Shown in pieces: positions 1-34,342 of a stretch of 64,000 nt of DNA. A model generated the notes under the pieces. It did not search any database. It worked only from the letters and a program-made list of their open reading frames with translations, and was not told the DNA's origin. The DNA is taken from positions 124,001 to 188,000 of the forward strand of contig NIVC01000460.1 in assembly GCA_002269645.1 (NCBI GenBank). Reading direction: 5' to 3'. The stretch is from Macrostomum lignano. Its lineage: Eukaryota. The translations under genes and the position numbers were made by a program. How positions within the stretch are numbered: position 1 is the first letter of the stretch; every line of letters starts with the position of its first letter.

Positions 1-788
1 TAGATATACCCAATGCTGTTTGATGTTGCTGTTTGAATCATATAACCTTTTTTTCAGAAGCTGTGCTCTTTCTGCATGAAAATTGCACTGCTACTTTACA
101 CATGCCTTGCTGTAAAAAGACACATTAAAGACCAACAAAGATGCTTCACAAGCTAAGATAATCTTTAGCAATGGTTATTACTATGTTTTCTAAATACTTA
201 GTACACTGAATGCCTGTCTTTGGCATTTGCACATTCTCCAGTTGTTCGGTAGGCGATTTTGCTTACCCTTGTCAGAACTGTCAATTGCGAATTGCTTCGA
301 GACTGGGTCAATTTTGCCCAACAACCTGGCCCAACAATAACAAATTTTTTTGTTTATGACAGAAAGTTCTAAACTCACAAAGGACACAGACATACATCTA
401 CATATATGTATAAAATCTTTCACTCTGTGGTCTTTCCGACTGGAATGGGAATGCAATGTTTGAGCAGAAAGAAAGTGTCTATGGCCCAATTTTGACCCAT
501 CTGACTGAAATGGAGAGTGACAAATATCTTCACTGTCTTGAAGAAGTTAAATACTACCTAACATTTTTTACATATGCTCTCAATAATCTTACCTTAATAA
601 TAATAATAGTAGTACAGTATATAATCATAGTAGTATTGGTAATAATAACAGGACAGTAACATTAATAGTAACAATATTAATATTAATAATAATAAAAAAA
701 TAATAAATCCAAAAAGCATTTATTATTATTATAAAAAAATAATATTAATTTTAATAGTATTCAGTGTACTTAGTATTTAGAAAACATC

Positions 789-1250
789 GTAACAACCATT
801 GCTAAAGAATATCTCAGCTTGTGAAACATATTTGTGGTGTGTCTGGGGTGTCTTTTTAAAGAAGAGACATGCGTAAAGCAGCTGTGCAATTTTTATTCAG
901 AAAGAGCAAAGTGTAACAATGTAGTTGGCTTCCCAAAAAATGACCATATATGGTATTTGGTAATATTGGGAAATGTTGTAACAACCATTGCTAAGGAATA
1001 TCTCAGCTTGTGAAGTATTTTTGTGTATGTCTGGGATGTATTTTTAAGGTAGAGACATGCATAAAGCAGCTGTGCATTTTTTATTCAGAAAGAGCAAAGT
1101 GCGACAATGTAGCAGCTCCTCAAAAATGACCATATATGGTATTCAGTATATTGGGAAACTTTATAACAACCATTGCTAGGGAATATCTCAGCTTCTGAAG
1201 CATCTTTGTGTGTGTCTGATGTGTTAAAATAGACACATGCGTAAAAAGTT
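789..1250. repeat. Tandem direct repeat, ~190-bp unit, about 2.5 diverged copies
   Basis: The block TAACAACCATTGCTA(A/G)(A/G)GAATATCTCAGCTT recurs at ~790, ~979 and ~1163, followed by matching downstream sequence (AGAAAGAGCAAAGTG...GACCATATATGGTATT). Confidence 0.85.
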
Positions 1251-2266
1251 AAAAATGTACACTATCTTGCATACTAAATAGACAATTTTGTTAACCATTT
1301 ACTGAACAATTTCTAAATGTCTATCTGAATGTCTGTTGGGAAACCAATACATTGGCAAGAGTAACAATAACACTTTTAAGTTATGATTAGGCCCAATACT
1401 TAAACAATGATTACCTTAAAATATTATTGCAACTTTAGGTTTAATGCCCTAAAGGTCCCAAAGTAAATAACTTTATTTAATAAAACTTTTTAACTATATG
1501 TTACTTTAAAACTTACAATTGTAAAATGAAAAAAAAACACTAAATTTTACCTTTTTAATTCTTAATTTACTAGCCTAATTAATTTCCTATTTCAAAAGTT
1601 TTATTTCTTAAATGTTTGCATTTGTTTTGGTTTCTTGATTTTTTTAGATTTGGAAGCACATTAAAAATATTTGGAAAGAGTTTTTGAATCCAAAACATTT
1701 ATATTTTTAAAAATAAAACATTTTTTCATTTTAGTCATAGATTTCAAATTCAAATCCAATATTGGATCCATCACTATTTATTGAATATTAATACTAGTAA
1801 GGAGTCTAATAAAAACTTATTTTTTGGAGCAGTTAGAAAGTGGTCTGATAACTGATATATTATGGTTAAAATATAATTGGTCTAAGATATGATAATGAGC
1901 TTAGGCCTTTATTTATTGAAAAAGGAAAAAATCATTTTTAAATCATGTAGGCCTACACAAGGCATCAGGCTTTGGCAAGCACTTGGTAATTTCTTAGCAG
2001 GGTCTAACAAAAATTTTTTCACCAAAAAACCCTTTCTTAGAAAATGATTATATACAAATGTTGTCTGAGGCCTACACTACAACTCGAATCTACATGTATT
2101 ATGGCAAGGCCAAGGCCCAAGGCTAGGCCTAATTTATGGTCAAATCAAGTCAGTCTTCCAGATTTTCCATCTTTAATCAGAATTCCTTGGCCATGCCGTG
2201 ACACACACAAACTGTTCAATCAGTTTACTTGCTGTAAAAGAGATAAAGAAGTTAAACATTTGGGTT

Positions 2267-2370
2267 ATCCTGAAGATTCCCGCGTTTAATTATAACCCCC
2301 ACCCCCCACCACCCTTGAATAGAGGGCGAAATAATTCCGTAAAATAATTAAACGCGGGAATCTTCAGGAT
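2267..2370. mobile_element. Miniature inverted-repeat element (MITE-like), 26-bp perfect inverted repeats
   Basis: ATCCTGAAGATTCCCGCGTTTAATTA (2267-2292) is the exact reverse complement of 2345-2370. The spacer is 52 bp. No target-site duplication is evident. Confidence 0.6.
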
Positions 2371-2931
2371 TGCCAACATTTGTAGGGCCTACTATACATG
2401 ACATGACTTAACAATTGGGAACTAGGAATTATTAGGGCCATTAAAATACAAGTCATATCGGTTATTTAAGATTGTCAGTCACGTGATTCACGACCATTTG
2501 AAAGAGTCAAAGTTTGCCGGAGGAAGGTTGTACACCTTGAAGCCGACTAAACTGAAACGGTTACGTACGGCAAGGAATCGCGAAAATGTCCTGGAAATTT
2601 TCATACATTTAAAAGTTTACACAGGTATAACAAATTTAAATGCCTAAAATATTATTGCTGCTATGATTAGCTACTAAAAGCACGTATCTGAATCTGCGTC
2701 CTAAAGAAAGTCAAAATTTGACTAATAATAATTTTATTTTATTGGTAAACAAATTACCACACGTTCTTAGCAGTCCACCAGAAGGCCCAACGATTTCTTA
2801 GAAATGCGTTGGATGAGAAAAATTCAAAAATTTAAAACAGGGTGCAGCTCATCTGGGCGATGTGGAGTCGATCTATAACCAACGTGGTTAACTTTTGTTT
2901 GACATTGCTTTAATAGCAATGTAACGATATA

Positions 2932-3020
2932 TACCGATTTTTTTCGGCAGCAATTGCGTAAGCTGAAGCCGCGTAGCGGCTGAAGCTTAGTAGAGCAATT
3001 GCTGCCGAAAAAAATCGGTA
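2932..3020. repeat. 89-bp near-perfect palindrome/hairpin
   Basis: TACCGATTTTTTTCGGCAGCAATTGC (2932-2957) is the exact reverse complement of 2995-3020. An inner arm TAAGCTGAAGCCGC / GCGGCTGAAGCTTA closes around a GTA loop. Confidence 0.85.
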
Positions 3021-3299
3021 CATGTCATTATTGTACCCTTTTGACTTCCCCTGTCTATGGCCCAGACATGTATAGTGCGGATGCTGAGTATGAAATGCGA
3101 TTGTTGCCGGAATGCGCTTTGAAAGGGTTGTAGAGATAATCAATCGTCTATGGCAAATTTAGTTGCTCTCTAAATGAAAGGGTTGTAGAGATAATTAATC
3201 GTTTATGGCAAATTTAAAGGACAGTGAAGACAGCTAGCCTGGCTGCCATGAGTTAATTCTCAAGTTGATTTTGAGCTTGAATTAATTCTCCTATTCGGA

Positions 3300-3700
3300 G
3301 TGCAAATAGGAAAACTAGCTATGATTCGCTACGCAAACATTCCTGGCGGAGAAATATGTGGACTCTCCACGGACGAGTTGGCTTTTGTCACCCGAGAGTC
3401 GAGCACGCGCTACGTTCTGGAGATGGACAACCTGGATGCGTCGTCCAGTTCCAACGGGCTGCCTGAGCTAGGTAGCGAAGATCTGGAAATGTTGGACCGA
3501 CTTGAGAGTGACTCAGTGCCGAAATCGACCGAGACGCAACGGAAGCTTCACGTGGCAAGGTTCCGACAGTTCCTCAACGAGAAGGGGCTCTGCCAGGAGT
3601 TTGAGCGTGTTCCGGATCGATTTTTGAACGATTATCTGAGGCTTTTCTGAGGTTTGTTCTTAAGAACTTTTTGTGACTATGAAACACTTTCGCCGTGTTG
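3300..3700 (+). pseudogene. Truncated Crypton/DUF3504-type tyrosine-recombinase-associated ORF fragment (transposon remnant)
   Basis: ORF 3300-3650 ends LESDSVPKSTETQRKLHVARFRQFLNEKGLCQEFERVPDRFLNDYLRLF*. This resembles the N-terminal core-binding region of Crypton/QRICH1/KCTD1/ZMYM-like proteins (P..T...T...+..F..WL......E.+P...LN.YL..F). It stops before any catalytic domain. Confidence 0.5.
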
Positions 3701-4132
3701 CTATTGTTGTTCCTTGTTTTGATAGCCAAATACATTCGTCTGAAATCCGGCAACAATCGAAAAAAGCCGACAAACAATTAAATTGTTACCGCAAGTATGA
3801 ATGCCGGAAACCATAGACAAAAGGGAACAATAATAAATCCAGTCTGTGGGTAGTCGATATACAAATTAACCTGCATGGCTTGAGTCCTAATTTCTAAATT
3901 TTTTTCCCACCCTCTCCTACCTCTTTACCGCTCCTACCGCTTCGCTTTACACAAATCGAAGGCATGATGGTCAACCCCCACAAAACACTGAATGATTACC
4001 ATTCGATCTACATGTAACTGCATGCTTTCAATAAAAAACTATCGTTTTATGCCGTTAAAATGAAAAGTTTCTATCTCCGTGTAGTGTGTATTTATCAACA
4101 CATCGTGACATCCAGCCCCAGAAGTTTTATTC

Positions 4133-4243
4133 AAGGACCACTAGAAGTTTAGCATCGCTAAATATACACGTAAACAAGCGGGCCTTCAAAAAAAATTGCA
4201 ATTATTGCGTCCTGACACAACAGTAACTTCTATAGTGGTCCTT
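4133..4243. mobile_element. Short degenerate inverted-repeat element
   Basis: CAAGGACCACTAGAAGTT (~4133-4150) versus AACTTCTATAGTGGTCCTTG (~4224-4243): an inverted repeat with one 2-nt indel. Confidence 0.4.
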
Positions 4244-4689
4244 GGTTATTATAAGCTTCCCAAAATCCTCGTTAGTCGACAGACTTTACTAATCTTTAAT
4301 TAACGGCTCAAATGTACTAAATCTTTTTGCAACTATCATGTAAGATTAATGGTCATGCAAAAGACGGTTGTGGGAAACATGGGCACCCCGGCTCCGACGC
4401 CTTCGACGACATTGTCACAAAATAACCTGCGCTTGAGGAAATTCTGCTTCCGATGATGACTCGAGCCTAAGCACAATGCTAGCACAAAGGTACAGCGGTC
4501 AGCGGCCCTTACTTTTTAATCGTGTATTTGAAGTACACTCTGTACCGGGGGATGGTTAATTGACTTTCGATGGTGTGAATCACACGAAAACACGCGCCGC
4601 GGTCAATTTTCGTGCACAATTGTCCCAGATGAATGTGCATGTTTGCGCACGGAATCGAACCAGGATGCCCCCACCCCGAAATTTACCCC

Positions 4690-4786
4690 CATCAAAATTC
4701 CGGAGAAGAAATCCCTTCCCCTTCCCTCTTCTGGGGTGCTGAATGCCCCCCCCCCCCGAAATGATAAATTCCTGGCTGCGCCACTG
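4690..4786 (-). mobile_element. One terminus of a non-autonomous DNA transposon (CAGTGGCGCAGCCAGG...poly-G type end)
   Basis: The minus strand reads CAGTGGCGCAGCCAGGAATTTATCATTTCGGGGGGGGGGG, a common terminus style of invertebrate MITE/hAT-like elements. No partner end was found. Confidence 0.35.
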
Positions 4787-5354
4787 GGCCCCGTACGCGA
4801 TCACACACAGATTGTACGTTACACATGTAAATTCTACTTAAAATTGTGATATAAATAATATAGCTCGTAAATAGAGGCATAATAAAATGATCGATCAAAA
4901 CAAAGCGTTTATTGATAAACAAGAGTCATAATTGAGAGTTCACTTTACATGTGATCATATCGTCAATTAGATCGATTGATATTGAAGCAGTGAATTCACT
5001 GAATAGAGAGACAACAATCAAAATGAACTTGAATTTACACTCAATGCAAAGATGCTAATACTGACAAATTTACACTATGTTTTTATGACCTCAAGAAAAT
5101 CCTCATACCCAGACTTTGGCGAATCACTTTAAGCAGCTAAACGCTGATCGTTCTTCGTAACATATTTGCTTATCTAGGAGCAAAGTAATAAAAACCCCAT
5201 CATCGTCCGGAAATGTTCCTCAAGCATTAATTATTTGTGTGGGGGCATATTTGGCGCACTTTTATGAAAATTAATAATGCTTCTGTGGTGCTGCGCGTAC
5301 AACCCCTATAGAAGGCAAGTTTGCAATGATATGCGGTTATTGGTTGCACAGTGT

Positions 5355-8300
5355 TCATTTGGACATTCCAGTTTTAACTGCGGATCCAGTGTTGGGTATT
5401 AGTTGATTGAAGGCGCTCAAAATTAGCTTCATTTGTTGTCGCTGATTTTCCAGTCCGCGTACCAAAGCAGCTTGATCTTCCCTCAGACTCCGCAGCTCCT
5501 GATGCAGACTGTTCTGAGCAGTTGACAATTGAGTCACTGCCTGTTGCAGCTGCTCCCAGTTACTCTGCATCTCGCCTTGCAGCCTCACCAGTTGTTTCTG
5601 CGATTCAAATTTTATCTCGTGCATCCCATCGTCGAGGCTCTCCCGCATCAGCTCCAGCATATCGGCCTGTCTCTCGATGGCGCTCTCGCTCTCGTTCTGC
5701 ATCTCCAGCAGCTGCTCAGTGTGCCCAATCAGCTCCTGCAGCTCTCCCCGATTCTGCGATACCGCCTGCAGCAGCTTCGGTCGTGACACTCGAAATCGTA
5801 GGGCCTGAAGCTTCAAAAACTTCTGGTAGTCCGCCGGAATGTCCGGCCCGTCGCCCGACCACCAAGGCTGAAAAGGCGATTTCAAACGCATCTATAGTTA
5901 CAGATGCATGCAGAGTGCATACAGATTGGCTATGCGAAGCCATGTGGCCTAATAAGTCAACTATTATTATCAATTTGAACTCGGCCACTGTACTTACTTC
6001 GGCAGCACTTCTTTTAGAGCATTTTGATGCATCGTCTCGCCTCCGACAGGTGCGGTACCACTTAGCCAGGTAGTAGATAAAAGATATCGGCGGAGGCAGA
6101 AAGCTGATGTGCCTGTATTCCTGGAGCATATCGTAGTACTTTCGCCTCCAAATCACCAAGGCCTTATCCGCCATTCTGTTCACAGTTAGACTGAATAGAG
6201 CAATCAGTAAGTTGACCATGACGATGTTGACGAGAATGAGGAACGCAAATATTAGAATATTGTAGAACCACCAGTGTCCTCTAGGATGAGCGATTTCGCC
6301 AACCTTGACGTTGGTTGAGTTTGCCTCATTGAAATTAGCCTGATTAAAGTCGAATTTCTCGAAAATTCCAAACATCATGTAGAAAGGCATGGTGAATATT
6401 TGAGCCGTAATCACCGAGAATGCTCGGTCATCGGATTCAATAGCGGCCACAGGAAATAGCAAGTTTAAAAAGAACACACCGAATGAGTAGAAGATTATGA
6501 AAATGAGCAGCAGAAACGGTAGCAAGTCTTTGATGATCAAGCTGCCTAGGATCGAGATCACGGGGCCGATTTTGTGGTAGTAGTAGAGAAACGCAACAGA
6601 CCGAAATCCCCAGAGCAGGAATGAGGTGCTTAAAACAATCTGGTTGGCGTGGCAGATTTTTCCTCTCGACTGCGCGTAGACAATCCCCGTCAGGTTTAAC
6701 AAAACGCCAGTCCACATCGCTAAAATCGCTAAAATATCGAAATAATTCAGCATGTCTTTGAAGTACTGGGGACACCAGAAGCCTTTGCCGAATGCGAACG
6801 TCCTTCGTTTGCACTTGCGCCTGTAGAAGTCGTCGATCTCGTGACAGGTGAACGATAGCGCGTACAGTGCGATGACCACTAGAAGAGCTAACTCCCTGGG
6901 TGGAACTTCCGTTGACGACAGTGGCAACCGAAAGCAGATGATGTGGTAGGCAAAAACGCAGAGAAAAACAATAAATGAGAAAAAGTATGAATAGAATTTC
7001 TTTTTGGCGGAGAGCTTCCACATTGGCACAACAGCGTCAGGTTTAGGCGCTGCCCAATCGCTGCATACGAAGTGGTGCATGCACTCGGTTGCAAACATGT
7101 CGTCGCAGTCGGACTCTTCTATTAATTTCAGCACCGTCTTGAATCCCGTTGTGCCATCTAGGGACGATCTGCTAGAGAATTTTGGTCCCTTTGTCGAGCT
7201 CCTGGACGAATCATCATCTTCATCCGAATTTGGCTCGAAGTCGATGTCCCCTCGAATGTAGTTATAGAGCAGTTCCTTGTCCTGAACAAAGCCATTCAAA
7301 TACAAGTCATCCAAGCACGTGGCCGTCACAGTGATAATTCGCTTTCTGAGCTTGCTCAACTGATCGTGCTTGCCTTCCCTGGCGACAACCTTCGACTTCA
7401 ACTGAATGATAGCGTTCAGAGCGCAAGGTATGATGTCGAACTGTCTGATGATAATCAGATCGGGTAGAATGTTCACTCTCTCGTGCAGAGCCGCGACGTC
7501 AGACATTGTGAGACTCTCGGCCTCGAGTGAGCTGATGCTAGAGTTTCTGCTCAATGAAAATCCTTGTTTAGCTTTCGCTCTTCTCAGAATCATCGGCATT
7601 TCTTTCGTTGGTCCCGCGTCCAGCTCACAACTGAACATGCTGAGGAACTCTTTCTCGGCTTTCAGGCTCAGAAGTTTGAGCCGAATCGCGCAACGGAGAA
7701 TGACCGGCGAATCCTGTTCAAAAGCTTTGCACAGAATGCTAATATCTGCACCGAATTCATCCGACTCATTGCCGAGACTGGCACCGCCGCCGTCATCTTG
7801 TCGCTTAGTGTTTCGGTCCTTTTCCACTTCGGCTAAGACAGAAGCGTCCGCGATCAGTGCGAGAGATTTTCTAGCAGTCTCCAGATCCGGCAGTTTCAGT
7901 CCGCACTTTGGCGGATCGATGAGACGCAGAAAGTCGACCTGGGAAACACCGTTGGCCGATGCAACTTCTGAAATGACGTCCAATCTTCCCTTGTCGAAGC
8001 CGAAATCGATGCAGGATAGGCCCGCGTGGGTCTCATATGAGAGTGACAGTCCTTTGTCTAGCAGGAAACGAATGTTCTCTTTGTGACCGGCTTCGCATGC
8101 AAAGTGGAGGCATGTTGCGCCGGCGTACGGACCCTTGGAAACCGGAAGCCGAACCAAATCCTCGGCAGACATTTCCGAAATCTCCGCAAGCGGCTCCAGT
8201 ATTTTTTTCAAGTCGTAGCGCCTAGAAAATGTGTGAGCAGCATGAAGTCCCTGAGAATTGACTAAAATCCGCTTGAGAATTTCAGCCATTTCAGTGTCAG

Positions 8301-10770
8301 TAGACGAGTATTTGAGAATCTTGGCCAGAAATTCTGTTGGCAGCACGGAACAGTGAAGAAAATTCTCGTGCACATTGTTCTCTCTGCTCGGATCAACACC
8401 GCTTGAGCACAGAAGCTTAACAAAGCGAATGTGATTCAGAGTAGCATTGTGATCGGCATAGAAATGGTTGTCAGGCGGCATGAAAAGCGAGTGAAGCAAG
8501 GTGCCCTGGCTCAAGTTGGCATGCCTGAATGATATTCTATCGCTATACTCGACTAAAAAGTCGTACAATTTATTTCTTTGATCGAATTTCTTTGGCAACG
8601 GCACGTAACGCAGAGCCAATTGAAGAGGCGTCTCACGGTCTTTGTTCAGCCACTTCAAGCTGTCCAGACCGCTTAATTCAACCACTCGAGTGAATGTTTC
8701 CTGAAAGCCTCTGGCGGCGTAGTGCAGACAAGAATTGCCGGCTTCGTCCGTCAGTTTGAGGCTGTGACGTGACGTCAGCGCCAGGCAGTGCTCGACAACT
8801 GACCAGCTCTGGTGCTCCAGCAGAAAGTGAAGCGGCATTTGCTTCTGCCTGTTTCCTTGAAACAGACCTTCCTGACCGAATGTGTTAATTATTTTAGACC
8901 ATTCTGTCCTACTAATTCTCTTATTCTTGGACAGATAGTGAAGACACGTATTGCCGTTAGAATCCGCCAGATTCGGACAAGCGCTCACTTTGCACGCAAT
9001 CTCAAGCAGTTTCATGCAAATTTCCGGCTTTTGAACCTCACAGGCAATGTGCAGCGGCGTTCTCTGGTTGTTATTCTCGAGAAGAATGCACTTCTCTTTG
9101 TCGTCTGCCATCTTTATGAGTTCGATGATCATCAGTCCATTGTCGCGCTTCTTAGCCGCAATGTGGTAGCACGTGTCGCCGCTCTGGTCTTGCAGGACCT
9201 CGAGAAAGTTCTTCCGAATGCTGGCATTGAGTGCCATGAAAACAAGCTCTAGGACTGTCTCAGCATTCTGATGCCTGCAGGCGATGTGCATGGGTGTCTG
9301 CATCGACTCATTCAGCTGCAATAGGCTCATTTCCTTAAACTCGGTTCTGTTAACCAGTTCAACGATGAGTCGCCCGTCGTGCCATCGCTTCGCAGCCATG
9401 TGGAAGCACGTATTCTTCTTTTGATCGCACTTCTGTGTTAGACAGTAACGATTCTCCTGCTGGGCCAGTTCGACAAGTTTCAGAGCGGTGCTCATGCCTT
9501 TGAACTCGCACGCTATATGCAGCGGCGTCTGCTTCCAGATGTTTTCAAGCAGCAGACCTTTCTCCTTGCTGGCTGCCATCTTCACGATCTCCATGATCAG
9601 CATGCCGTTGTCTCGCTTTCTTGTTGCGATGTGAAAGAAAGTGTCCAGATTGTGATCGGCCATCTCTAAGCAGTCACTGTTAACTGCCAATGCCAGTTTG
9701 ATCAGCTTCAATGCCGTGTGCGCATCCTGCTTGTCGCAGGCAATGTGCAACGGAGTCTGCTTCCAGTTGTTGAGCAGAAGCAGGCACTGCTCACTGCAAT
9801 ATCCTTTCTCGCCAACTAACTTGGCAATGAGTGTCTCCGTGTCCTTTTTCCTGGCTGCAACATGAAGGCACGTGTCCCCATTCTGATCTCGGGCGGTCTC
9901 TAAGCAGTTCTCATCGGCTTTGACTGCCTGAGCTACTAGCTGGAGCACTGTAACTGCCGGCTGCTCTTCGCATGCAATGTGGAGCGGCGTCTGCTTGTTG
10001 CAGTTCTCAGCCAGTAGCAGTCTACCGCTGCAGTCCACCAGCTTCACCAGCTCCGCGATCAACGTGCCGGTGTCCCGCCGACCGGCAGCAAAGTGAAAGC
10101 AGGTGTCTCCATTGCGATCCTGCATCTTCTCGAGGCATCTGGCGTCAACTGACAGCGCCGCCTCCACTAATTCGGTAATGATCTGCGAGCAGTGGCATTT
10201 GCACGCGTTCAGGATTGGCGTGCAGCAGTTGTTGTCCTCCTGCAGCAGGCAGGTGGGGCCGAAGGCCTCCAGCAGGGCTTTCAGAGCGAAGGCTCCGCGG
10301 CAATCCAAAGCGGCAAAGTGAGCAGCGGTTCGGCCGGATGTCAGCGAAGCGAGCAGCTTCTTGCCAGCCGTGGGAACCGGTATGACTTTCGTCAGCGAGA
10401 CAACTTTGTCGAAGAGCTTCGCTTTGGCAGCGTCAAGCAGCTGCTGCTGCCAGCAGTCGGCGGCGAAGCGGGTTCCGCTTATTGACGGCCGCGGGTTCAG
10501 CCGGAACGACACATCGGCTGCGTCAATCGAATCCGACCGCTGATTCAGCGACGTGAAGTACGGCCGAGTCGACCGAGCTTCTTCCACAGCTTCGGCCGTG
10601 ATTGCGTAGAACTGCGGCCGGCCCGTCTGCCGCGCTGGAGAGGCCGGCGTAGCTGCGGCCTGCGGTGTTCGCGGTGGCCTGGGTGGCGGAGGCGGCGCCG
10701 GCGGAGGCAGCGACGGCAACTGCGGCAGCAACGGCTCCAGTTCGACTTCATCAGGCAAATTTCCGCTCAT
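5355..10770 (-). CDS. TRP cation channel with ~20 N-terminal ankyrin repeats and a TRPM-like transmembrane/TRP-box/coiled-coil region (~1761 aa, 2 exons)
   Basis: Exon 1 is 10770-5998 (donor GAA|GTAAGT). Exon 2 is 5867-5355 (acceptor TTTTCAG|CCTTGG, phase 0), and the intron is 130 bp. There are repeated TPLHIAC / DTCxHxAA ankyrin motifs and six hydrophobic segments. Motifs: S4-S5 KIGPVISILGSLIIKDLLPF, pore FTMPFYMMFG, S6 NIVMVNLLIALF, TRP box WRRKYYDMLQEY..LPPP. Exon 2 encodes a long coiled coil. Confidence 0.9.
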
Positions 10771-11499
10771 TTTTGCGCCTCTAAACTAGGCGTCAACGCC
10801 CGCTAATAACTGGAGCCAGCGCGGAAACTCTGCGAATATTAGTTTATGCTTTTTCTTATCTGAAATTTGCATATTTCAATAAAGGCCCAGCGAGAGTCTG
10901 GTCGGTTAATCTGTTCAGGCGTGAAGTGACTCTGTAGCCGCGGCAGTGTAAATCTTTAGGTATTAAAGTTAAGTCTTAAGATTTCTGTTACCGATAGGCT
11001 TACTATGCTAGTATCAAATGAAGCAGATTGGCCGGGGTATGGTAGCTTTTGAATCAGCATTCACTTATCTGCAGAGTGGGGTCGGTAACATCTTAATAAA
11101 AGGTAGAGAGACAAAAACAGAGGCAGAGAGAGAGACCAACTAGCAACGTCCATCGCTGATGCGTACAGCCCACGCAACCTCACAATTTGCTATTGTAAAA
11201 TAATGCCACAATAGTGAAGAGAATGCTCTTCTTATCACAGTGCGTAAGAAGTTAGTTTGTTTACCGCGGTGCAATAACTAATGTAATGCCGCGATTGCAG
11301 AAGCCTACAAAATTTCTAACGCACTACTTATATACGTCAACTAAGTAGTCAAGATGGAACTTCGATTTCTAATCTACATATTGACGTGATTGGCTGATCG
11401 TTTAGTGTCGACTAGTTTTGACTTTTGAAAACCTTTCTGTTACAAATTAGGTTAGGGACGGTGGTTGAGACCAGTGCAGAAGGCGGCTGCTGCTCACGT

Positions 11500-11899
11500 T
11501 GCAGGGGACTCATCACTAGAGAACGCATAGCGCTGTGTGAGGTTTCATTGTCGCTCAGGCAGTGAAAGCGCCAAGCACTTTATCTGCCACTGCCCGAGCT
11601 TCACCAGGGCCAGGCTCACTCGGCCAAACCCGGTTCTCTTCGACGTTTGCAGACCCGAGAGCACCCCGCTGCTCGTTCGGTACGTCAGTGACACGGGACG
11701 AACAAAATTCTTCCCCACAGCGAGACCGACGGGTCCCCCTGAGCGACATCACTTCGATGGAAATAGGCGGTCCTCTCCGCCTCCTCGCTGCACCTGCCAG
11801 TCGATGCTACCCTGCAGCCGAGTCAAGGGGTGTCACCATAGACAAATCTGGTCGAGAAAAACCCGCGTTCCTATAGAGCCTTTGTTTAGCGATGCTGTT
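11500..11899 (+). mobile_element. 3' fragment of a non-LTR retrotransposon (ORF2 C-terminal CCHC zinc knuckle)
   Basis: Translation RCVRFHCRSGSESAKHFICHCPSFTRARL matches the C-x(2-3)-C-x(n)-E(S/T)xxH(F/L)xxxCP...R knuckle at the end of LINE ORF2 proteins. The frame is interrupted by stops upstream. Confidence 0.5.
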
Positions 11900-12452
11900 C
11901 AGGTGTGTCGCCACCGGCGACATGTCCCCCCCCCCTGTAAAAGCTATGGGGGGCATGCCAATACTTTGTCCCCCCACCCCACCTTGTGACCCGATTTGGA
12001 AATCTATTTTTTGCTTCAGGGCGATAAAGCATAGCGCTTGCGGCGCCAAAATGAGTGCCTGCGGCGCTAAAATGAGTGCCTGCGGCGCTAAAATGAGTGC
12101 CTGCGGCGCTAAAATGAGTGCCTGCGGCGCTAAAATGAGTGCCTGCGGCGCTAAAATGAGTGCCTGCGGCGCTCAAGTGAGTGCCTGCGGCGCTAAAATG
12201 AGTGCCTGCGGCGCTCAAGTGAGTGCCTGCGGCGCTAAAATGAGTGCCTGCGGCGCTAAAATGAGTGCCTGCGGCGCTAAAATGAGTGCCTGCGGCGCTA
12301 AAATGAGTGCCTGCGGCGCTAAAATGAGTGCCTGCGGCGCTAAAGTGAGTGCCTGCGGCGCTAAAATGAGTGCCTGCGGCGCTAAAGTGAGTGCCTGCGG
12401 CGCTAAAATAAATGCCAGGTAAAAAATTTTTACCTAGAGGTGGCGATGCCTG
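11900..12452. mobile_element. Non-autonomous element with degenerate TIRs carrying an internal 21-bp minisatellite (~17 copies)
   Basis: The left end CAGGTGTGTCGCCACC pairs with the right end GGTGGCGATGCCTG. The internal array (GCCTGCGGCGCTAAAATGAGT)n spans 12041-12410. The head and array are homologous to 37219-37882. Confidence 0.65.
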
Positions 12453-13050
12453 GCAAAACAGCCAGTTCCCGAGAGTGCCACGGTTTCCGCTTCGATGTAG
12501 CTGCGGTTGAGTCCCAGCAGGGCCCTGCGGAGGGCGGGGAAGGACAGGGGACGGTCACGCGGGATTGCCGGCAGTCTGGGGGGAGGGGTTAGTCCACCTC
12601 TCCGAATGGTTGGCCATGCACCAGCAGCCCTACACTATATGACTCTTTCTACAAAATTTTCGGCATCGACCCAGTTACCAACCGAGTGAGCGAGTGAGTC
12701 ATTATATTGTCGATCTAGCAATACAGCAAGAAATCTTAATTATATATACAGACACAGCTTAATTGCACTTTTCAATTTTAATAAGCAATGGCGCGGGTAG
12801 TATAGAGTGAGAGCGAAAATTGCATTTTTTAATTGCAACAAATTTTTCCACTCCGAACCAGAGTGGTTTGGGGGAGCCTTGTTGATCGGAGCGCGAAAGC
12901 TTTGGTGCTCCAGTTTCAAGCCGTCTGCCGCTGCCGCCAAGGAGGGGCTGCTGACGCACTGGAAGGGAGGCTGGCTGGGCTGGGAGGGAGCCAAACGGGA
13001 CCAAGCGACAGCAATTGACCTGCTGCAGCCCTGAACTTGATCGGAAAACA

Positions 13051-13230
13051 GGTGTGGGGTAACTGCAACTGACTGTTCAGGATGTGGGGTAACTGTAGCT
13101 GACTGCTCAGGGTGTGGGGTAACTGCAGCTGACTGTTCAGGGTGTGGGGTAACTGCAGCTGACTGCTCAGGGTGTGGGGTAACTGCAGCTGACTGTTCAG
13201 GGTGTGGGGTAACTGCAGCTGACTGTTCAG
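13051..13230. repeat. 30-bp minisatellite, 6 copies
   Basis: Unit GGTGTGGGGTAACTGCAGCTGACTG(T/C)TCAG. Confidence 0.9.
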
Positions 13231-13867
13231 GGTGTTGCAAACGCGAATAGCAGGGCGCAGTTTAAAATGTTTTTCTTTTTTGATTCAGCATTTCCATTTT
13301 CGTTGTTAGACTTTCGCTTTTTAGCAGCGCATGTTATTGCTATTAATCAATAATTTCAAATGAAAAGGGTACAGGGACTACTCCAGCAATGTCGGCAGAC
13401 TTGCCAGCAGTGAAAGTTTCAAAGTTCAAAAGCAGTCTATATAGTTTGCAATCTAGGGTTTTTTCAAAAGCAAAGTCGCACAGCCTAAAAAAATACCCGC
13501 TGCATTTGAATAATTATATGGTTGAAAAAAAACTACAATTGAAACTAGAAATAAATTTTGTCAAACGCATTTTAACTGCGCATTAAGTATTTACTAATGG
13601 GGTCAACAGTCTAGCCTATGTGAGCTGTGCTGTGTTTATATAATATGCTTAGCTTCGTATGCCAAATTTCTGACGTATGCCAAATAGCTCACGAGAGTCA
13701 CATACAGGAGACAGACTGGAAGGTTTTTTGTTATTTATGACAGCAGGCACCAACGCAACAGCAATAGAAATTAATGAAATTTTTTGTTATAATTAATTTC
13801 AGAAAATTGCGCATTTTTATTTGGTTATACGAAAGTTGCTTTAAGAATGTTGTTCCTCGCAGATGCA

Positions 13868-15964: not shown

Positions 15965-16680
15965 GATCTCTCACTGATCTAATCTCACACTGATCTAATC
16001 TCTCACTGATCTAATCTCTCACTGATCTAATCGCTCACTGATCTAATCTCACACTGATCTAATCTCTCACTGATCTAATCTCTCACTGATCTAATCTCTC
16101 ACTGATCTAATCTCTCACTGATCTAATCGCTCGCTGATCTAATTTCTCGCAGATCTAATCTATCACTGATCTAATCTCTCACTGATCTAATCTCTCACTG
16201 ATCTAATCTCTCACTGATCTAATCTCTCACTGATCTAATCTCTCACTGATCTAATCGCTCGCTGATCTAATTTCTCGCAGATCTAATCTATCACTGATCT
16301 AATCTCTCACTGATCTAATCTCTCACTGATCTAATCTCTCACTGATCTAATCTCTCACTGATCTAATCTCTCACTGATCTAATCTCACACTGATCTAATC
16401 TCACACTGATCTCATCTCTCACTGGTCTAATCTCTCACTGATCTAATCTCACACTGATCTAATCTCACACTGATCTAATCTCTCACTGATCTCATCTCTC
16501 ACTGGTCTAATCTCTCACTGATCTCATCTCTCACTGGTCTAATCTCTCACTGATCTAATCTCTCACTAATCTAATCGCTCGCTGGTCTAATTTCTAGCAG
16601 ATCTAATCTATCACTGATCTAATCTCTTACTGATCTAATATCATACTGATCTGATCTCTCATTGATCTAATGTACCGGCT
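15965..16680. repeat. ~16-bp minisatellite (CTCACTGATCTAATCT)n
   Basis: More than 40 copies with a periodic variant block (CGCTCGCTGATCTAATTTCTCGCAGATCT). Confidence 0.9.
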
Positions 16681-17235: not shown

Positions 17236-18432
17236 ATCATCTCCATCTACCTCTCTCACACTCCTATCCCCATCTCTATCTCCCCTCTCATTCATATCCC
17301 CATCTCAATCTTCATCCCTCCATCTCAATCTCCATCCCTCCATCTCAATCTCAATCCCTCCATCTCAATCTCCATCCCTCCATCTCAATCTCCATCCCTC
17401 CATCTCAATCTCCATCCCTCCATCTCAATCTCCATCCCTCCATCTCAATCTCCATCCCTCCATCTCAATCTCCATCCCTCCATCTCAATCTCCATCCCTC
17501 CATCTCAATCTCCATCCCTCCATCTCAATCTCCATCCCTCCATCTCAATCTCCATCCCTCCATCTCAATCTCCATCCCTCCATCTCAATCTCCATCTCAA
17601 TCCCCATCCCTCCATCTCTATCTCCATCTCAATCTCCATCCCTCCATCTCAATCTCCATCTCAATCTCCATCCCTCTATCTCTATCTCCATCTCTATCCC
17701 CATCTCAATCTCCACCCCTCCATCTCTATCCCCATCTCAATCTCCATCCCTCTATCTCTATCTCCATCTCAATCCCCATCTCAATCTCCATCCCTCCATC
17801 TCTATCCCCATCTCAATCTCCATCCCTCCATCTCTATCTCCATCTCAGTCTCCATCCCTCCATCTCTATCTCCATCTCAATCTCCATCCCTCCATCTCTA
17901 TCTCCATCTCAATCTCCATCCCTCTATCTCTATCTCCATCTCAATCTCCATCCCTCAATTTCTATCCCCATCTCAATCTCCATCCCTCCATCTCTATCCC
18001 CATCTCAATCTCCATCCCTCTATCTCTATCTCCATCTCAATCCCCATCTCAATCTCCATCCCTCCATCTCTAATCCCCATCTCAATCTCCATCCCTCCAT
18101 CTCTATCTCCATCCCTCCATCTCAATCCCCATCCCTCTATCTCTATCTCCATCTCAATCCCCATCTCAATCTCCATCCCTCCATCTCTATCCCCATCTCA
18201 ATCTCCATCCCTCCATCTCTATCCCCATCTCAATCTCCATCCCTCTATCTCTATCTCCATCTCAATCCCCATCCCTCCATCTCTATCCCCATCTCAATCT
18301 CCATCCCTCCATCTCTATCCCCATCTCAATCTCCATCCCTCCATCTCAATCTCCATCTCAATCTCCATCCCTCTATCTCTATCTCCATCTCAATCCCCAT
18401 CTCAATCTCCATCCCTCCATCTCAATCTCCCT
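17236..18432. repeat. 20-bp pyrimidine-rich minisatellite (CCATCTCAATCTCCATCCCT)n
   Basis: About 1.2 kb, homogeneous at the 5' end and increasingly scrambled 3'. It produces the spurious S/P/H/L/I ORFs in all three plus frames. Confidence 0.95.
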
Positions 18433-19074
18433 CACACTCTGAAGGGCGCTTCAGTGGCTCTGATCTTTTTCTCGTTTTAATGCTCCCACCAGCACCTATA
18501 GCATATAGTCTAAAATGTTTTCCTCTTAGTCTCACGCCTCCTATGCATTCCCAAATAGAATTACAGGTTCAGAGCTGCATCGCTACATGCTTGCTACACT
18601 GGCCAGAAAAGTATCAGAAACTGACGCAAACCAAATAATGAACAGCTAACAGACTTAAAAGCTCATAACAGAATTTAGCACTGCTCCGAAGGCCAAACCG
18701 ATCGAGGTATTGTATTTCTCTCGGAATACAGTAGCACACAAACACACAGAATCCCCTGGAACTGTATACTTCATTTCCTCATTTGGGAAAAATATCCGTA
18801 TACCCAACACTCTGCAGAGAGTGTGCGCTCTTCAGATGCAGTATGTTAATGAAATCTGATCCTTTTGTTCGAAGAAGTTGTGTCAGTGACTAATAACAGT
18901 ATAATACTATACAACGGTTACGATATATAGAATTGCCACAATATTCTTCTTGATGCGGTGGGTTGAGTTTTATATATACATGTGAACCAACACTTTTACC
19001 CTGCGTGTGGGTGGCTGCTATATTTATTTTATTTAGCTAAATTTGGTGCTGTGCTGTCTGTCAGGCTTGTATGG

Positions 19075-20000
19075 GATTGTGGTGAAGTTTCGGGGGGATT
19101 GTGGTGAAGTTTCGGGAGGATTGTGGTGAAGTTTCTGTGGGGATTGTGGTGAAGTTTCGGGGGGATTGTGGTGAAGTTTCGGGAGGATTGTGGTGAAGTT
19201 TCGGGGGGGGGTTGTGGTGAAGTTTCGGTGGGGATTGGAAGTTTCGGGGGGATTGTGGTGAAGTTTCGGTGGGGATTGTGGTGAAGTTTCGGTGGGGATT
19301 GTGGTGAAGTTTCGGGGGGGATTGTGGTGAAGTTTCGGTGGGGATTGTGGTGAAGTTTCGGGGGGGATTGTGGTGAAGTTTCGGTGGGGATTGTGCTGAA
19401 GTTTCGGGGGGGATTGTGGTGAAGTTTCGGTGGGGATTGTGCTGAAGTTTCGGGGGGATTGTGGTGAAGTTTCGGTGGGGATTGTGGTGAAGTTTCGGGG
19501 GGGGGATTGTGGTGAAGTTTCGGTGGGGATTGTGCTGAAGTTTCGGTGGGGGTTGTGGTGAAGTTTCGGTGGGGGATTGTGGTGAAGTTTCGGTGGGGAT
19601 TGTGGTGAAGTTTCGGTGGGGGATTGTGGTGAAGTTTCGGGGGGGGATTGTGGTGAAGTTTCGGTGGGGATTGTGCTGAAGTTTCGGTGGGGGTTGTGGT
19701 GAAGTTTCGGTGGGGGATTGTGGTGAAGTTTCGGTGGGGGTTGTGGTGAAGTTTCGGTGGGGGTTGTGGTGAAGTTTCGGTGGGGGATTGTGGTGAAGTT
19801 TCGGTGGGGATTGTGATGAAGTTTCGGTGGGGATTGTGGTGAAGTTTCGGTGGGGGTTGTGGTGAAGTTTCGGTGGGGATTGTGATGAAGTTTCGGTGGG
19901 GATTGTGGTGAAGTTTCGGTGGGGATTGTGGTGAAGTTTCGGTGGGGGTTGTGGTGAAGTTTCGGTGGGGATTGTGGTGAAGTTTCGGTGGGGGTTGTGC
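19075..20000. repeat. 23-24-bp G-rich minisatellite (TTGTGGTGAAGTTTCGGTGGGGA)n
   Basis: About 39 copies with variable G-run length. Confidence 0.95.
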
Positions 20001-20707
20001 TGATATTTCAGAGAGGGGGTTGTGCTGAGGTTGCAAAATTTAAGCTTATAGTTTAGCCTGCAGAAGTGGCCACTTCTCACTGTGGTAGGTTTGTCTTACT
20101 TCTACAATAACTGTTATAAAGTCGGACATTCCGTTTGAAGCGCCCCCACGCCTCCTACAGGCCACGCAAGGGGCACCTGCAATTTTCCAAAGAATCCAAC
20201 TTTGAAATCGCAGCGGGTTTATAGCCGCCTCCTAATATAAAAAAACAGCTAGATAGATATATTGGAAATTGGCTGAGTGACTGAGTGTGAGTCGGCATTA
20301 TACTCGTAAAATGACGAATGCATTGCTCAAGTTGACTCTGGCCCAGATACCGGCTACACTCTCTCTTTCATTCGGTTCCTTCGTATTGGCAAAATTTGAA
20401 TTATGAGGCTTCAAAGCGGCTCTCTTGCAGTACGAAAACCCAAGGCGTCGCAAAAATCACGATCCCAAAAAGCTGCCCCCATGAAACTAGATAATAAATT
20501 TTAACTGTTTCTCGTGACTGCTCAGGGCTCACGTGGCCCGTGCGGTGAAATAGCAAATCACTTCACTATAGGCAGACAAACTTGCGAAAAATTGAGGATT
20601 TTGACTATTCAGAACTTCTCTTTTTTCTCTTTTCTCTCTTTTGGGAATTTAGTCTTTTGAAATAACTGATTTTTCTCGTTATATGAATCCTTTCCTTAAT
20701 CTCACGC

Positions 20708-21500: not shown

Positions 21501-33489
<11,989 letters not shown>

Positions 33490-34342
33490 CAGACCGCCTC
33501 AAATTGATATTGTTATAATCGACGATAATTGTTCACATAGACACAAAATTGATGTTTTCCAATTTTGTTGTAACATTGCGCCCTTGTTATTGTCTGGCTG
33601 TTGTCAGTTTTGGTTTGACTCTGTAATATTTGTTGTTTTATGTGAATTGTTTATCAGCATTGCTGCGCCCATTTGTTAAATAATGCATCAAATATCTCTA
33701 GTTCGAGACAATTAGACAAGCCCTACTACTCTTCTGTTAGTAGGCGAGTAGGGAATTTTTGCGTAGAAATTTGACTGCGTGTAAAACTGGTATTGGTTTA
33801 TCATACTGTTATTTAATTACCACGGTAAGTGGCCCAGTATAATTTAATTTTATTGCAATTAAAACTTTTCTGTCTTACCTTAAAACAATTAATTCTTACA
33901 TTTAAACCACTGCTTGCCACAAAGAAAAGGCAGTTTTATTATTATTTTTACATACTGTTTAAATTAATATAAGGAATTCAATTGCGTCCGCCGCCACCCC
34001 TCTCCCTCAAAAAACCCGAACGGCTTACTCCCAGCAACATTTTCTCAACCGTTTTTTCAGGTCGAAACAGCCAGTGCGTTTTTATAATATTGAGTGGCTA
34101 CCCTGTTTAATATTGGCTTTGTTTCTGTTTGCTTTTGTGAGTCTCTCTGCTTTTGTTTGTTTGTTTGTTTCATTTACTGATATCATATCGTATCTCAGTT
34201 GCTTTAAAATTGGCTTAATTAATGAGGTATTTATAGTGCAATGGCAAATACACTGCAATGCCCCGATGAATCTTCATGGCAGTTCGAGACCAGTTCGCCT
34301 GCACCTAATGAACCCACGGCTAGCAAGAATTTGCATTGGATT

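Follow-up and report, generated by a model that had tools for sequence, protein, structure and literature searches.

Ankyrin repeats and channel core in a single intact gene

A locus in the analysed stretch of Macrostomum lignano DNA (64,000 nucleotides of contig NIVC01000460.1; hereafter the window) raises the question of whether a long ankyrin array and a TRP channel core belong to one protein and, if so, which TRP family that protein represents. A sequence-only reading had described a TRPA/TRPN-like array joined to a TRPM-type core and had suggested a possibly undescribed TRP subfamily. The minus-strand reading frame 10770..5716 is open for 1684 codons, and exon 1 is unbroken, its ATG being preceded, 4 codons earlier, by an in-frame stop (Table 1). 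The splice proposed at 5998/5867 was borne out by canonical sites (GTAAGT donor at 5997-5996, TTTTCAG acceptor ending at 5868), an in-frame join of exon 1 to exon 2, and a product identical letter for letter to PAA82638.1 (A0A267G9E7; Macrostomum lignano, "hypothetical protein"). The locus is an intact gene with ankyrin repeats and channel in one protein. It is one gene rather than a fusion artefact because repeats and channel share a single 1591-codon exon, the model equals the public annotation, the same architecture is present in 21 of 23 close relatives, and an environmental relative carries it in a single 4.6-kb ORF. The intron position is common to the window gene and the environmental relative L002.

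Table 1. Features of the ankyrin-bearing channel gene in the window.
Feature	Residues	Position	Strand	Remarks
Whole gene BOX15_Mlig016225g1	1761 aa	5355..10770	(-)	two exons and one 130-nt intron
Exon 1	codons 1-1591	5998..10770	(-)	Pro-rich N-terminus, ankyrin array, linker, S1-S6, TRP helix
Intron		5868..5997	(-)	GTAAGT...TTTTCAG, 130 nt, read from sequence
Exon 2	codons 1592-1761	5355..5867	(-)	codons at 5867..5358; stop 5357..5355
Proline-rich N-terminus	1-140	10351..10770	(-)	pLDDT <50 in model
Ankyrin array, ~20 repeats	~159-939	7954..10296	(-)	Pfam, AlphaFold, Foldseek
Family-specific post-ankyrin segment	940-1097	7480..7953	(-)	LRLIDPP..LKLPD..A motif, then low-complexity
MHR4-like linker	1098-1252	7015..7479	(-)	LPDLIIIRQFDIIPCALNAII...LDDLY...FKTVLKLIEESDCDDMFATECMHHFVCSDW
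S1-S4 voltage-sensor-like domain, S4-S5 linker, S5, pore helix, S6	1258-1538	6157..6999	(-)	
TRP helix, TRP box	1536-1561	6088..6165	(-)	IWRRKYYDMLQEY + FLPPP; aligned to TRPM TRP helices

Ankyrin solenoid and MHR4-like linker

The predicted array of ~20 repeats over the first ~950 residues was confirmed by Pfam Ank families (E 4e-38 to 4e-18) and by an AlphaFold model of aa 101-1000 (mean pLDDT 74; mostly 80-94 over aa 260-950), in which ~20-21 helix-pair repeats lie between aa ~159 and 939. The central array consists of 77-78-aa double-repeat units, 43-53% identical to one another. Its best structural matches by Foldseek were 24-repeat ankyrin-R/B solenoids and NOMPC, and NOMPC (5vkq) and Drosophila TRPA1 (7ykr) were among the matches of the N-terminal model. 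The label "TRPA/TRPN-like" was not upheld: the array resembles long ankyrin solenoids in general, and nothing ties it to those of TRPA or TRPN in particular. The repeats are indeed Cys-rich (4.6%, vs 1-3% elsewhere). These cysteines recur at fixed sites of the duplicated repeat unit (TPLHIAC, GDTCxH, xxCL), some of which are consensus positions normally occupied by a buried Ala, a pattern which argues for a structural rather than reactive role. Nothing was found in support of the suggested mechano- or electrophile-gating.

The segment following the array (aa 940-1097) is conserved within the family, is modeled with low pLDDT, and has no Pfam match. Beyond it, the proposed MHR4-like segment was examined by profile comparison. 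Two clades are named here: clade W, the lineage-specific expansion which holds the window gene, and clade M, a flatworm ankyrin/TRPM-like clade which includes the TRPM-MCLZ orthologues. Direct hhalign comparison of the window linker with canonical TRPM N-termini was not significant. The linker did match the pre-S1 region of clade M (Prob 95, E 3.6e-8), and that region matched canonical TRPM MHR4 (Prob 99.3, E 3.6e-20); because the M-clade region matches both, the window linker is tied to canonical MHR4. In a family profile, the last 40 linker residues align to the end of TRPM3 MHR4 ("ktvlelieeaeceDlfAtdC...eeW" with the TRPM3 segment ending "...DMW"), so a remnant of MHR4 has been kept downstream of the ankyrins, as proposed. 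A linker motif, RQF[DE]x[IL]P, is common to clades W and M. Pfam search of the window protein found no SLOG/MHR1-2 domain, in keeping with the claim that the ankyrin array stands where MHR1-3 would be. Nor did it find a match to PF25508 or TRPM_tetra, a point against the TRPM reading.

A TRPM-type channel core

All motifs quoted in the sequence-only reading were located in the protein: AALHERVNILPDL at aa 1093 and LDDLY at 1153, FATECMHHFVCSDW within aa 1210-1239, HKIGPVISILGSLIIKDL at aa 1399, PFYMMFG within 1454-1473, and WRRKYYDMLQEY...FLPPP within aa 1536-1561. Pfam Ion_trans covers aa 1262-1536, with TMPFYMMFGIFE as the pore helix and NIVMVNLLIALFS as S6. When the single sequence was searched against the PDB with phmmer, the best 60 matches were TRPM except for one Chlamydomonas TRP-like channel (6pw4), and the best match was NvTRPM2 (5e-21), in an alignment that starts at S1 and extends into the C-terminal helices. 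The best 60 matches of the family profile were all TRPM (2e-30 to 8e-15), as were the top 50 Foldseek matches (700-820 aligned columns). Mean family core HMM scores were 60 bits for two bona fide TRPCs, 130 for SLOG-TRPMs, and 141 for M-clade members. With TRPM dominating the best PDB and Foldseek matches and the TRPC controls far lower, the core is shown to be TRPM-type, as had been claimed.

Conservation across the family is 100% for the Trp of the TRP helix and 88% for the Glu of QEY. Columns corresponding to the TRPM Ca2+ site are Glu (100%), Asp/Glu (in place of the S2 Gln), Asn (100%), Asp (100%), and the TRP-helix Glu (88%). Both pore-loop cysteines are missing from the window protein, as had been noted, and both are present in clade M. 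The selectivity filter reads FGIFE in the window protein and F[T/G][N/I]F[D/E] in the family vs [YF]GE in TRPM; because this filter is atypical, conduction properties are not transferable from TRPM. Exon 2 encodes a post-TRP "rib"-like motif (PWW...YQKFLKLQALRFRVSRPKLL) followed by a long helical, heptad-rich tail. The motif (WW..YP..Y..FL.FQA..FR..RP.L) is conserved in paralogues and the environmental relative, and the rib-like motif is likewise conserved in clade M. The tail forms long helices in a model of the C-terminal half of only moderate quality (pLDDT 58.5), has a crude heptad score of 0.62-0.88, and aligned with the C-terminal helices of NvTRPM2 in the phmmer search.

Placement of the gene and alternative explanations

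Clade W is separate, strongly supported (bootstrap 97-100), expanded, and almost entirely from Macrostomum: its named members are all Macrostomum lignano, the remainder being an environmental contig and unannotated clusters. The named members of clade M are all from flatworms. The TRPM-MCLZ clade was identified by the spacing of three landmarks, the S4 Tyr, pore Tyr, and TRP Arg-Thr (found at 93/175 residues vs 92/174 published; PMC10788528, PMC12861061). The species represented, and an S4 Tyr in the Heterobilharzia and Fasciola proteins, gave the same identification. Its members, along with other M. lignano proteins with Ank, PF25508, and Ion_trans domains, were the best matches outside the family. 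The ingroup of W, M, and SLOG-TRPMs was separated from the outgroup with bootstrap 100 in a tree whose outgroup was limited to two TRPCs.

Clade W is most parsimoniously viewed as a fast-evolving offshoot of the ankyrin-bearing flatworm "TRPM-like" channels, a placement which was favored, as W+M, in 53% of quartets. Alternatively, W might have split off earlier as a TRP lineage in its own right, with either TRPM plus the flatworm TRPM-like clade or TRPM+TRPS as its sister group and with an ankyrin array acquired or kept separately; W would then constitute a genuinely separate TRP subfamily. We consider this unlikely, despite several observations consistent with it. A neighbor-joining distance tree placed W (bootstrap 97) outside M plus the SLOG-TRPMs, 33% of quartets agreed, and W has neither the pore-loop cysteine pair nor a detectable PF25508, both of which M keeps. 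By HMM and hhalign scores the W core shows no preference for M over canonical TRPM (profile-profile scores 286 vs 306, with 485 between M and canonical TRPM), and because of this equidistance either an older independent lineage or long-branch attraction may be at work. However, the node joining M to the SLOG-TRPMs had a bootstrap of only 48%, and W is the longest branch (distance to outgroup 2.17 vs 1.85-1.90 for others), the classic set-up for long-branch attraction. The linker, moreover, is significantly similar to that of M and not to canonical TRPM and shares the RQF[DE]x[IL]P motif with M, and a single ankyrin gain in flatworms, to which the named members of both clades belong, is more parsimonious.

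Two further explanations fared worse. In a highly repetitive, polyploid genome, the locus could be a duplicate undergoing decay or a chimeric annotation, for example one that merges an ankyrin gene and a channel gene; minisatellites fill the window, and the family includes many fragmentary or fused M. lignano models. A second genomic copy, however, is collinear with the window gene over 5416 nt and differs by 1 nt in the intron, and the two differ by 27 synonymous and 16 non-synonymous codons (crude dN/dS ~0.19) with frames intact in both. This excess of synonymous changes between two intact copies shows the window gene to be under purifying selection. Together with 1591 + 170 open codons, canonical splice sites, and an architecture kept across paralogues and an independent environmental contig, it makes decay or chimerism highly improbable. 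Least credible of all is a flatworm TRPN (NOMPC) or TRPA, with a long ankyrin spring on its own, superficially TRPM-like core. The ~20 repeats fall in the TRPA/TRPN range, and 5vkq and 7ykr appear among the N-terminal structural matches, but the preference of the array for ankyrin-R/B indicates a generic solenoid fold, and neither sequence nor profile retrieved a TRPN or TRPA chain among the best 60 PDB core matches, whereas real TRPCs do pick up NOMPC as next-best family. TRPN/TRPA identity is also contradicted by the end of MHR4, the TRP helix, and FLPPP, all of which align to TRPM.

Proposed channel and comparison with known systems

The window protein probably forms non-selective cation channels of the TRPM superfamily as one of four subunits, and is most parsimoniously an offshoot of the flatworm TRPM-like clade. 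In it, a ~20-repeat ankyrin solenoid replaces the SLOG/MHR1-2 module and most of MHR3, while the MHR4-like linker, S1-S6 core, TRP helix, and helical, coiled-coil-like C-terminal tail are kept. The solenoid would act in the cytosol, either as a scaffold or to bind partners. Tetramers may assemble via the core and C-terminal helices, and the S1-S4/TRP-helix pocket may gate the channel as in a TRPM. A contribution of intracellular Ca2+ to gating is probable, since the S2 Glu, S3 Asn and Asp, and TRP-helix Glu of the TRPM Ca2+ site are kept.

The closest known system is Sm.TRPM-MCLZ (Smp_333650, A0A5K4FCC0), published as a TRPM-like channel that carries ankyrin repeats at its N-terminus and has no MHR1/2-SLOG (PMC10788528, PMC11731825). 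It is the meclonazepam target in Schistosoma mansoni (PMC10788528, PMC11731825, PMC12861061) and the one characterised member of the ankyrin-bearing group, and the name "TRPM-like" has been used for its clade (PMC12861061). Because the ankyrin-for-SLOG design belongs to this described clade and is already published, the suggestion of an undescribed TRP subfamily or new system fails: the window gene represents a known channel design in an undescribed relative from a free-living flatworm, not a new design. Both proteins have ankyrin repeats where SLOG/MHR1-2 would stand, an MHR4-like linker with RQF[DE]x[IL]P, a TRPM-type S1-S6 core with a TRP helix (...EY....PPP), a post-TRP F[IL]xxQAxxxR motif, and few exons (three in Sm.TRPM-MCLZ, two in the window gene), and both are flatworm-restricted. 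What is new in the window gene is its separate expanded clade, its longer array (~1250 aa before S1 vs ~830-850 in the orthologues), the lack of the pore-loop cysteine pair and of a Pfam-detectable PF25508, and its divergent filter (FGIFE vs FYSIFEV or FY(A/S)MVG(D/E) in clade M). The TRP box likewise differs (WRRKY vs WLA(E/G/D)RY or WQFER), the S4 pocket position which sets meclonazepam sensitivity (His/Tyr) is Gly1388, and identity is only ~23% in the aligned linker-to-TRP region.

With canonical TRPMs (TRPM1-8, NvTRPM2, TRPM-PZQ) the window protein shares the six-helix core, S4-S5 linker and pore helix, S6 NxxxxNLLIAxF, a TRP helix with conserved Trp, Glu-Tyr and PPP motif, the terminal MHR4 motif (T.L.L.....D/F.A..C...L...W), the VSLD Ca2+-site residues, and long C-terminal helices. 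It differs in having ~20 canonical ankyrin repeats instead of SLOG/MHR1-2, no Nudix or kinase domain, no pore-loop disulfide cysteines, a non-canonical filter, and no Pfam TRPM_tetra match. TRPN/NOMPC (29 repeats) and TRPA1 (~16-17) also place a long N-terminal ankyrin solenoid on a six-helix TRP core; their arrays resemble that of the window protein only in generic ankyrin fold, whereas its core, TRP helix, and linker are TRPM-type, and no evidence points to tethering to microtubules or to a reactive-cysteine coupling domain of the TRPA1 type. TRPS (ced-11-like, Himmel et al. 2020) is similarly a divergent TRPM relative with an altered TRP domain, but is defined by SLOG + Nudix without ankyrin repeats (PMC7306681); the window protein, with ankyrin repeats and without SLOG/Nudix, is the opposite.

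Gene structure, second copy and neighborhood

The channel gene is carried by a minus-strand open reading frame of 1684 codons (10770..5716), with an in-frame stop four codons 5' of the ATG, and its two exons encode a product of 1761 aa. By exact-sequence look-up, this product is identical to PAA82638.1 / A0A267G9E7, annotated in M. lignano as "hypothetical protein BOX15_Mlig016225g1", and the splice from 5998 to 5867 proposed by a sequence-only reading of the locus is the annotated one. A second copy of the protein, g2, is 99.1% identical. The corresponding genomic copy on contig NIVC01000930.1 is collinear with the window gene along its entire 5416 nt; the two differ at 44 positions, distributed as 27 synonymous and 16 nonsynonymous codon changes and one change in the 130-nt intron. 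The window gene is under purifying selection, as indicated by a dN/dS of ∼0.19 (a crude estimate) and by the intact frames of both copies. A pseudogene was rejected on the grounds of two intact copies and an excess of synonymous changes. When window positions 5355-13770 were compared with the second contig, identity was 99.2% across the gene and 98.8% over the first 500 nt downstream. Over the 500 nt preceding the ATG, ungapped identity fell to 43%, pointing to an indel or to upstream sequence that differs between the copies.

Minisatellites fill the window from 782 to 63997, with more than 35 distinct arrays (TRF score ≥150; periods of 12–241 nt). Many long ORFs outside the TRP gene are mere translations of these arrays, which also account for the extreme local GC-skew swings. 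Three further exon-sized ORFs with Pfam domains appear to belong to neighboring animal genes.

Coordinates of the channel gene, neighboring features of the window and the related environmental contig
Feature	Coordinates	Strand	Basis or content
Exon 1	up to codon 1591, then GTAAGT donor at 5997-5996	minus	DNA read directly
Intron	130 nt; acceptor TTTTCAG ends at 5868	minus	DNA read directly
Exon 2	5867..5358, stop 5357..5355, frame kept	minus	DNA read directly
Nuclear-receptor C4 zinc finger ORF	21501-22724	plus	Pfam, exon-sized
ICA69 C-terminal domain ORF	39467-39988	minus	Pfam, exon-sized
RAWUL (Polycomb-group RING finger-like) ORF	53819-54853	minus	Pfam, exon-sized
Minisatellites (examples)	12039-12416, 15966-16671, 17264-18430, 19073-20003, 22756-23746, 30869-31993, 34337-35512, 49284-50235, 52841-53770
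Environmental contig JAZBNS010000602.1 (5106 nt)	ORFs 42-4655 and 4718-4966		ankyrin repeats + channel, 521 bits

The channel core is of the TRPM type

When residues 1086-1761 were searched against the PDB, the best 60 distinct sequences were TRPM channels except for one Chlamydomonas TRP-like channel (6pw4), the top match being NvTRPM2 (5e-21), with an alignment that begins at S1 and extends into the C-terminal helices. With the family profile as query, the best 60 were all TRPM (2e-30 to 8e-15), the alignment starting with "ktvlelieeaeceDlfAtdClyklvkeeW" opposite the end of TRPM3 MHR4. Likewise, the top 50 Foldseek matches to a model of the C-terminal half were all TRPM (700–820 aligned columns), and the family core HMM gave two clear TRPC controls an average of 60 bits versus 130 for SLOG-bearing TRPMs. 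The TRP box IWRRKYYDMLQEYRHISFLPPP aligns with TRPM WKFQRY.L..EY....P.LPPP, with the Trp invariant in the family. These results bear out the TRPM-type core of the sequence-only reading, whose quoted motifs are all present where it placed them. Since the best PDB and Foldseek matches are TRPMs and the TRPC controls score far lower, the core does not group with TRPN, TRPC, or TRPA.

Individual assignments to other ankyrin-bearing families were also rejected. The TRPN channel NOMPC (5vkq), a core behind ∼29 ankyrin repeats, lies outside the best 60 core matches, and the likeness of the array to it is generic; for the TRPC controls, unlike the window protein, NOMPC ranks as the next-best family. 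No TRPA chain occurs among the best 60 core matches, and a TRPM-type TRP box is present, whereas TRPA channels have a TRP-like helix lacking that box and a cysteine-rich coupling domain.

The pore loop FNQANFNEANSTNVKVGEIAHPRGH contains no Cys, so that the conserved TRPM cysteine pair is missing, and the selectivity filter reads FGIFE (family consensus F[T/G][N/I]F[D/E]). Because of this filter and the missing pore-loop cysteines, selectivity is not transferable from TRPM to the window channel.

Ankyrin array and domain anatomy

Pfam detected only ankyrin families (E-values of 4e-38 to 4e-18) and Ion_trans (aa 1262-1536) in the window protein; at E≤0.1 the scan found no SLOG domain (PF18139, LSDAT_euk), nor did Pfam find PF25508 (the TRPM2-like domain), TRPM_tetra (PF16519), or Nudix. 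An AlphaFold model of aa 101-1000 (pLDDT 74 overall, mostly 80–94 at aa 260-950) contains ∼20–21 helix-pair ankyrin repeats from aa ∼159 to ∼939, consistent with the long array that had been read from the sequence. Structural matches to the array model are led by 24-repeat ankyrin-R/B solenoids, followed by NOMPC, latrotoxins, and Drosophila TRPA1, and the modeled array is a generic long ankyrin solenoid.

The central array is built of double-repeat units of 77–78 aa that are 43–53% identical at the protein level, and at the DNA level a tandem-repeat search over the ankyrin-coding sequence detected no recent repeats; the units are old. The high Cys content of the region (4.6%) reflects residues that recur at fixed places in the duplicated unit (TPLHIAC, GDTCxH, xxCL), the Cys of TPLHIAC standing where the consensus has a normally buried Ala, and these cysteines look structural.

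The model of aa 948-1761 is of moderate confidence (pLDDT 58.5) and displays the expected helices together with three long C-terminal helices. The C-terminal tail has a crude heptad score of 0.62–0.88 and is paired by phmmer with the C-terminal helices of NvTRPM2; PF16519 gave no match to it.

Relatives in sequence databases

The family profile, run with HMMER against the full set of 1.84 billion representatives, yielded 1307 matches at E<1e-3, 47 of them at E<1e-30, and these fall into three tiers. The close family (>400 bits) comprises ∼26 clusters at 50% identity, with Pfam ankyrin repeats in 21 of 23 proteins; per-protein ankyrin calls rely on Pfam scans, home-made ankyrin HMMs being too insensitive beyond the close family. 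Named members that were looked up are all from M. lignano, bar one labeled "Kangiellaceae bacterium MAG". The main ORF of this environmental contig (JAZBNS010000602.1) ends at a GTAAGT-like site past the TRP helix, and the following small ORF contains the family exon-2 motif. These features mark the gene on the contig as eukaryotic (flatworm-like), with two exons and its intron positioned as in the window gene, and its place in a bacterial bin as a mis-binning. Conservation of the ankyrin-plus-channel architecture in this gene and in the paralogues led us to reject a gene-fusion artifact.

Proteins of the next tier (230–115 bits) combine ankyrin repeats with the second half of PF25508 (MHR3/4) and Ion_trans. 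Their named sources are M. lignano, Schistocephalus, and Opisthorchis, to which a follow-up search added Fasciola, Paragonimus, Heterobilharzia, Echinostoma, Mesocestoides, Anoplocephala, Hymenolepis, and Protopolystoma. The third tier, from ∼127 bits downward, consists of canonical SLOG-bearing TRPMs.

Two further observations concern individual database entries. The Opisthorchis viverrini protein KER32702.1 (P0039; 1906 aa) contains two separate channel cores (residues 669-998 and 1364-1697) and most likely represents two tandem ankyrin/TRPM-like genes merged in one annotation. A 12-member TRPM-like clade (bootstrap 100; proteins of 1200–1400 aa, including P0067, P0069, P0084, P0089, P0109, P0113, P0120, and P0126) has long N termini in which Pfam detects neither SLOG nor ankyrin repeats, and at most a weak match to the end of MHR4.

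Phylogenetic placement

A neighbor-joining tree of 127 sequences was built from Scoredist distances over 278 S1-TRP columns; two TRPCs served as outgroups, and 200 bootstrap replicates were run. The ingroup received a bootstrap of 100; the window family with two divergent M. lignano proteins (clade W) received 97 (core family, 100), and the TRPM-MCLZ orthologues of parasitic flatworms with M. lignano ankyrin/PF25508 proteins (clade M) received 95. A home-built SLOG HMM identified 43 SLOG proteins among the matches, none of them in clade W or clade M. The node uniting M with the SLOG-TRPMs, with W outside, had a bootstrap of 48. Quartets gave W+M 53%, W basal 33%, and W+canonical 14%, W having the longest branch, and hhalign profile-profile scores of the cores were 286 for W-M, 306 for W-canonical, and 485 for M-canonical. 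Measures drawn from the core (NJ, quartets, HMM cross-scores, and hhalign) are thus divided over a sister relation of W and M.

The signal on the place of W is clearer outside the core than within it. The W linker, the pre-S1 segment at aa 1098-1252, matched the M pre-S1 region in hhalign (Prob 95, E 3.6e-8, 133 columns), with the motif RQF[DE]x[IL]P common to both, and the PF25508-positive M region in turn matched canonical MHR4 (Prob 99.3, E 3.6e-20). Direct comparison of the W linker with canonical TRPM N termini was not significant (Prob 0.9), and the family profile places the last ∼40 linker residues opposite the end of TRPM3 MHR4. For the MHR4-like segment of the initial reading, hhalign matches reach significance only on a two-step route, from the W linker through the M region to canonical MHR4. 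In view of the linker match, the common ankyrin N terminus, and the flatworm-only distribution, W is most parsimoniously read as a rapidly evolving Macrostomum branch off the flatworm ankyrin/TRPM-like lineage.

Against this stand two readings that give W a deeper root, the position to which the node of bootstrap 48 and a third of the quartets correspond. An older origin of W on its own is unlikely given the same linker match and distribution. Less probable still is that W constitutes a TRP subfamily in its own right, branching basally to TRPM plus TRPM-like channels and expanded in macrostomids, whose ∼20-repeat solenoid would serve as a gating spring or tether in the manner of NOMPC; this would be a second mechanosensory channel with an ankyrin spring, evolved independently on a TRPM-type core. 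The window gene is an uncharacterized member of a distinct, expanded, Macrostomum-centered clade within or adjoining the known flatworm ankyrin-bearing TRPM-like channels.

Predicted gating mechanism

The window protein has a gating apparatus of complete TRPM type, with the S6 motif N-IVM-VNLLIALFS, the invariant Trp and Glu-Tyr in the TRP helix, and an S4 Arg. Across clade W, conservation is 100% for the S2 Glu, the S3 Asn, and the S3 Asp and 88% for the TRP-helix Glu, while the S2 Gln position of TRPM is Asp or Glu. We take these S2, S3, and TRP-helix residues to correspond to the VSLD Ca2+ binders of TRPM2/4/5/8, as placed in established TRPM structures. The protein would be expected to form a tetrameric cation channel that may be gated through the S1-S4/TRP pocket, with a probable contribution of intracellular Ca2+, and the ankyrin solenoid could act as a cytosolic scaffold. 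The stretch or electrophile gating proposed earlier found no support: the cysteines of the array seem to have a structural role, and the TRPA1 coupling domain and the pre-S1 region are unrelated.

Comparison with known channels

The architecture itself has a published precedent. Sm.TRPM-MCLZ (Smp_333650), the schistosome target of meclonazepam, is encoded by a three-exon gene; multiple ankyrin-like repeats lie in the long N terminus of its product, which also has a VSLD, pore, and TRP helix of the TRPM type (PMC10788528). According to a 2024 review, it "lacks the NH2-terminal MHR1/2 or SLOG domain" and has ankyrin-repeat modules instead (PMC11731825), and a 2026 paper proposed the name "TRPM-like" for the group on account of its N-terminal ankyrin repeats (PMC12861061). 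The window protein has in common with this group the N-terminal ankyrin repeats, the lack of SLOG, and a TRPM-type core with TRP helix. Because the same design is reported in these papers, the claim of an undescribed TRP subfamily fails (PMC10788528, PMC11731825, PMC12861061); every detail of the initial observation that was checked holds, and so do its domain arrangement, its link to TRPM, and its MHR4-like segment, but not an undescribed kind of channel. In the literature searched, the window gene and Macrostomum ankyrin/TRPM-like channels are not described, and free-living flatworm members are untreated. Surveys of TRPM/TRPS call the family ankyrin-free, with Platyhelminthes outside their sampling (PMC7306681, PMC13143021), and an abalone survey reported SLOG in all its TRPM-like proteins.

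The trematode and cestode clade recovered here is the TRPM-MCLZ clade, as judged by landmark spacing, the S4 Tyr, and matching species lists. In P0127, one of the protein matches, the S4 Tyr, pore Tyr, and TRP-helix Arg-Thr are 93 and 175 residues apart, versus 92 and 174 for H946, Y1038, and R1120 of Sm.TRPM-MCLZ, and the S4 site is Tyr in Heterobilharzia and Fasciola, in agreement with the publication. A single TRPM-MCLZ-clade query returned trematode, cestode, and monogenean orthologues, the S. mansoni entry not among them, and in a homologue search with a mixed alignment Macrostomum words dominated and no schistosome proteins were returned; the clade is therefore identified by spacing, species, and S4 residue rather than by accession.

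Flatworm TRPM-like channels, including the Macrostomum clade, record at least one exchange of the SLOG module for an ankyrin array within the TRPM superfamily, followed by enlargement of the array through tandem duplication of a two-repeat unit. The sole characterized channel of this architecture, TRPM-MCLZ, is targeted by an anthelmintic. As a free-living model, M. lignano is tractable and open to transgenesis. Its TRPM-PZQ has already been functionally expressed (PMC9910428), with HEK293 as host, and for these reasons a catalog of M. lignano ankyrin/TRPM-like paralogues would offer a route to the role of the ankyrin module.

TRPS channels (soromelastatins) have SLOG and Nudix domains, are ankyrin-free, and form a separate clade sister to TRPM (PMC7306681); the window protein, compared with them by domains alone, reverses these criteria, lacking SLOG and Nudix and possessing ankyrin repeats. 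Clade M sequences retain C...C ahead of the (H/N)P.G motif, whereas the pore loop of the window protein is Cys-free. The meclonazepam pocket of TRPM-MCLZ has His or Tyr in S4 and Arg-Thr in the TRP helix, whereas S4 of the window protein has Gly1388 and the TRP-helix ERT is replaced by RHI. With ∼23% identity over the aligned linker-to-TRP region, the window protein is a distant paralogue of TRPM-MCLZ rather than its orthologue.
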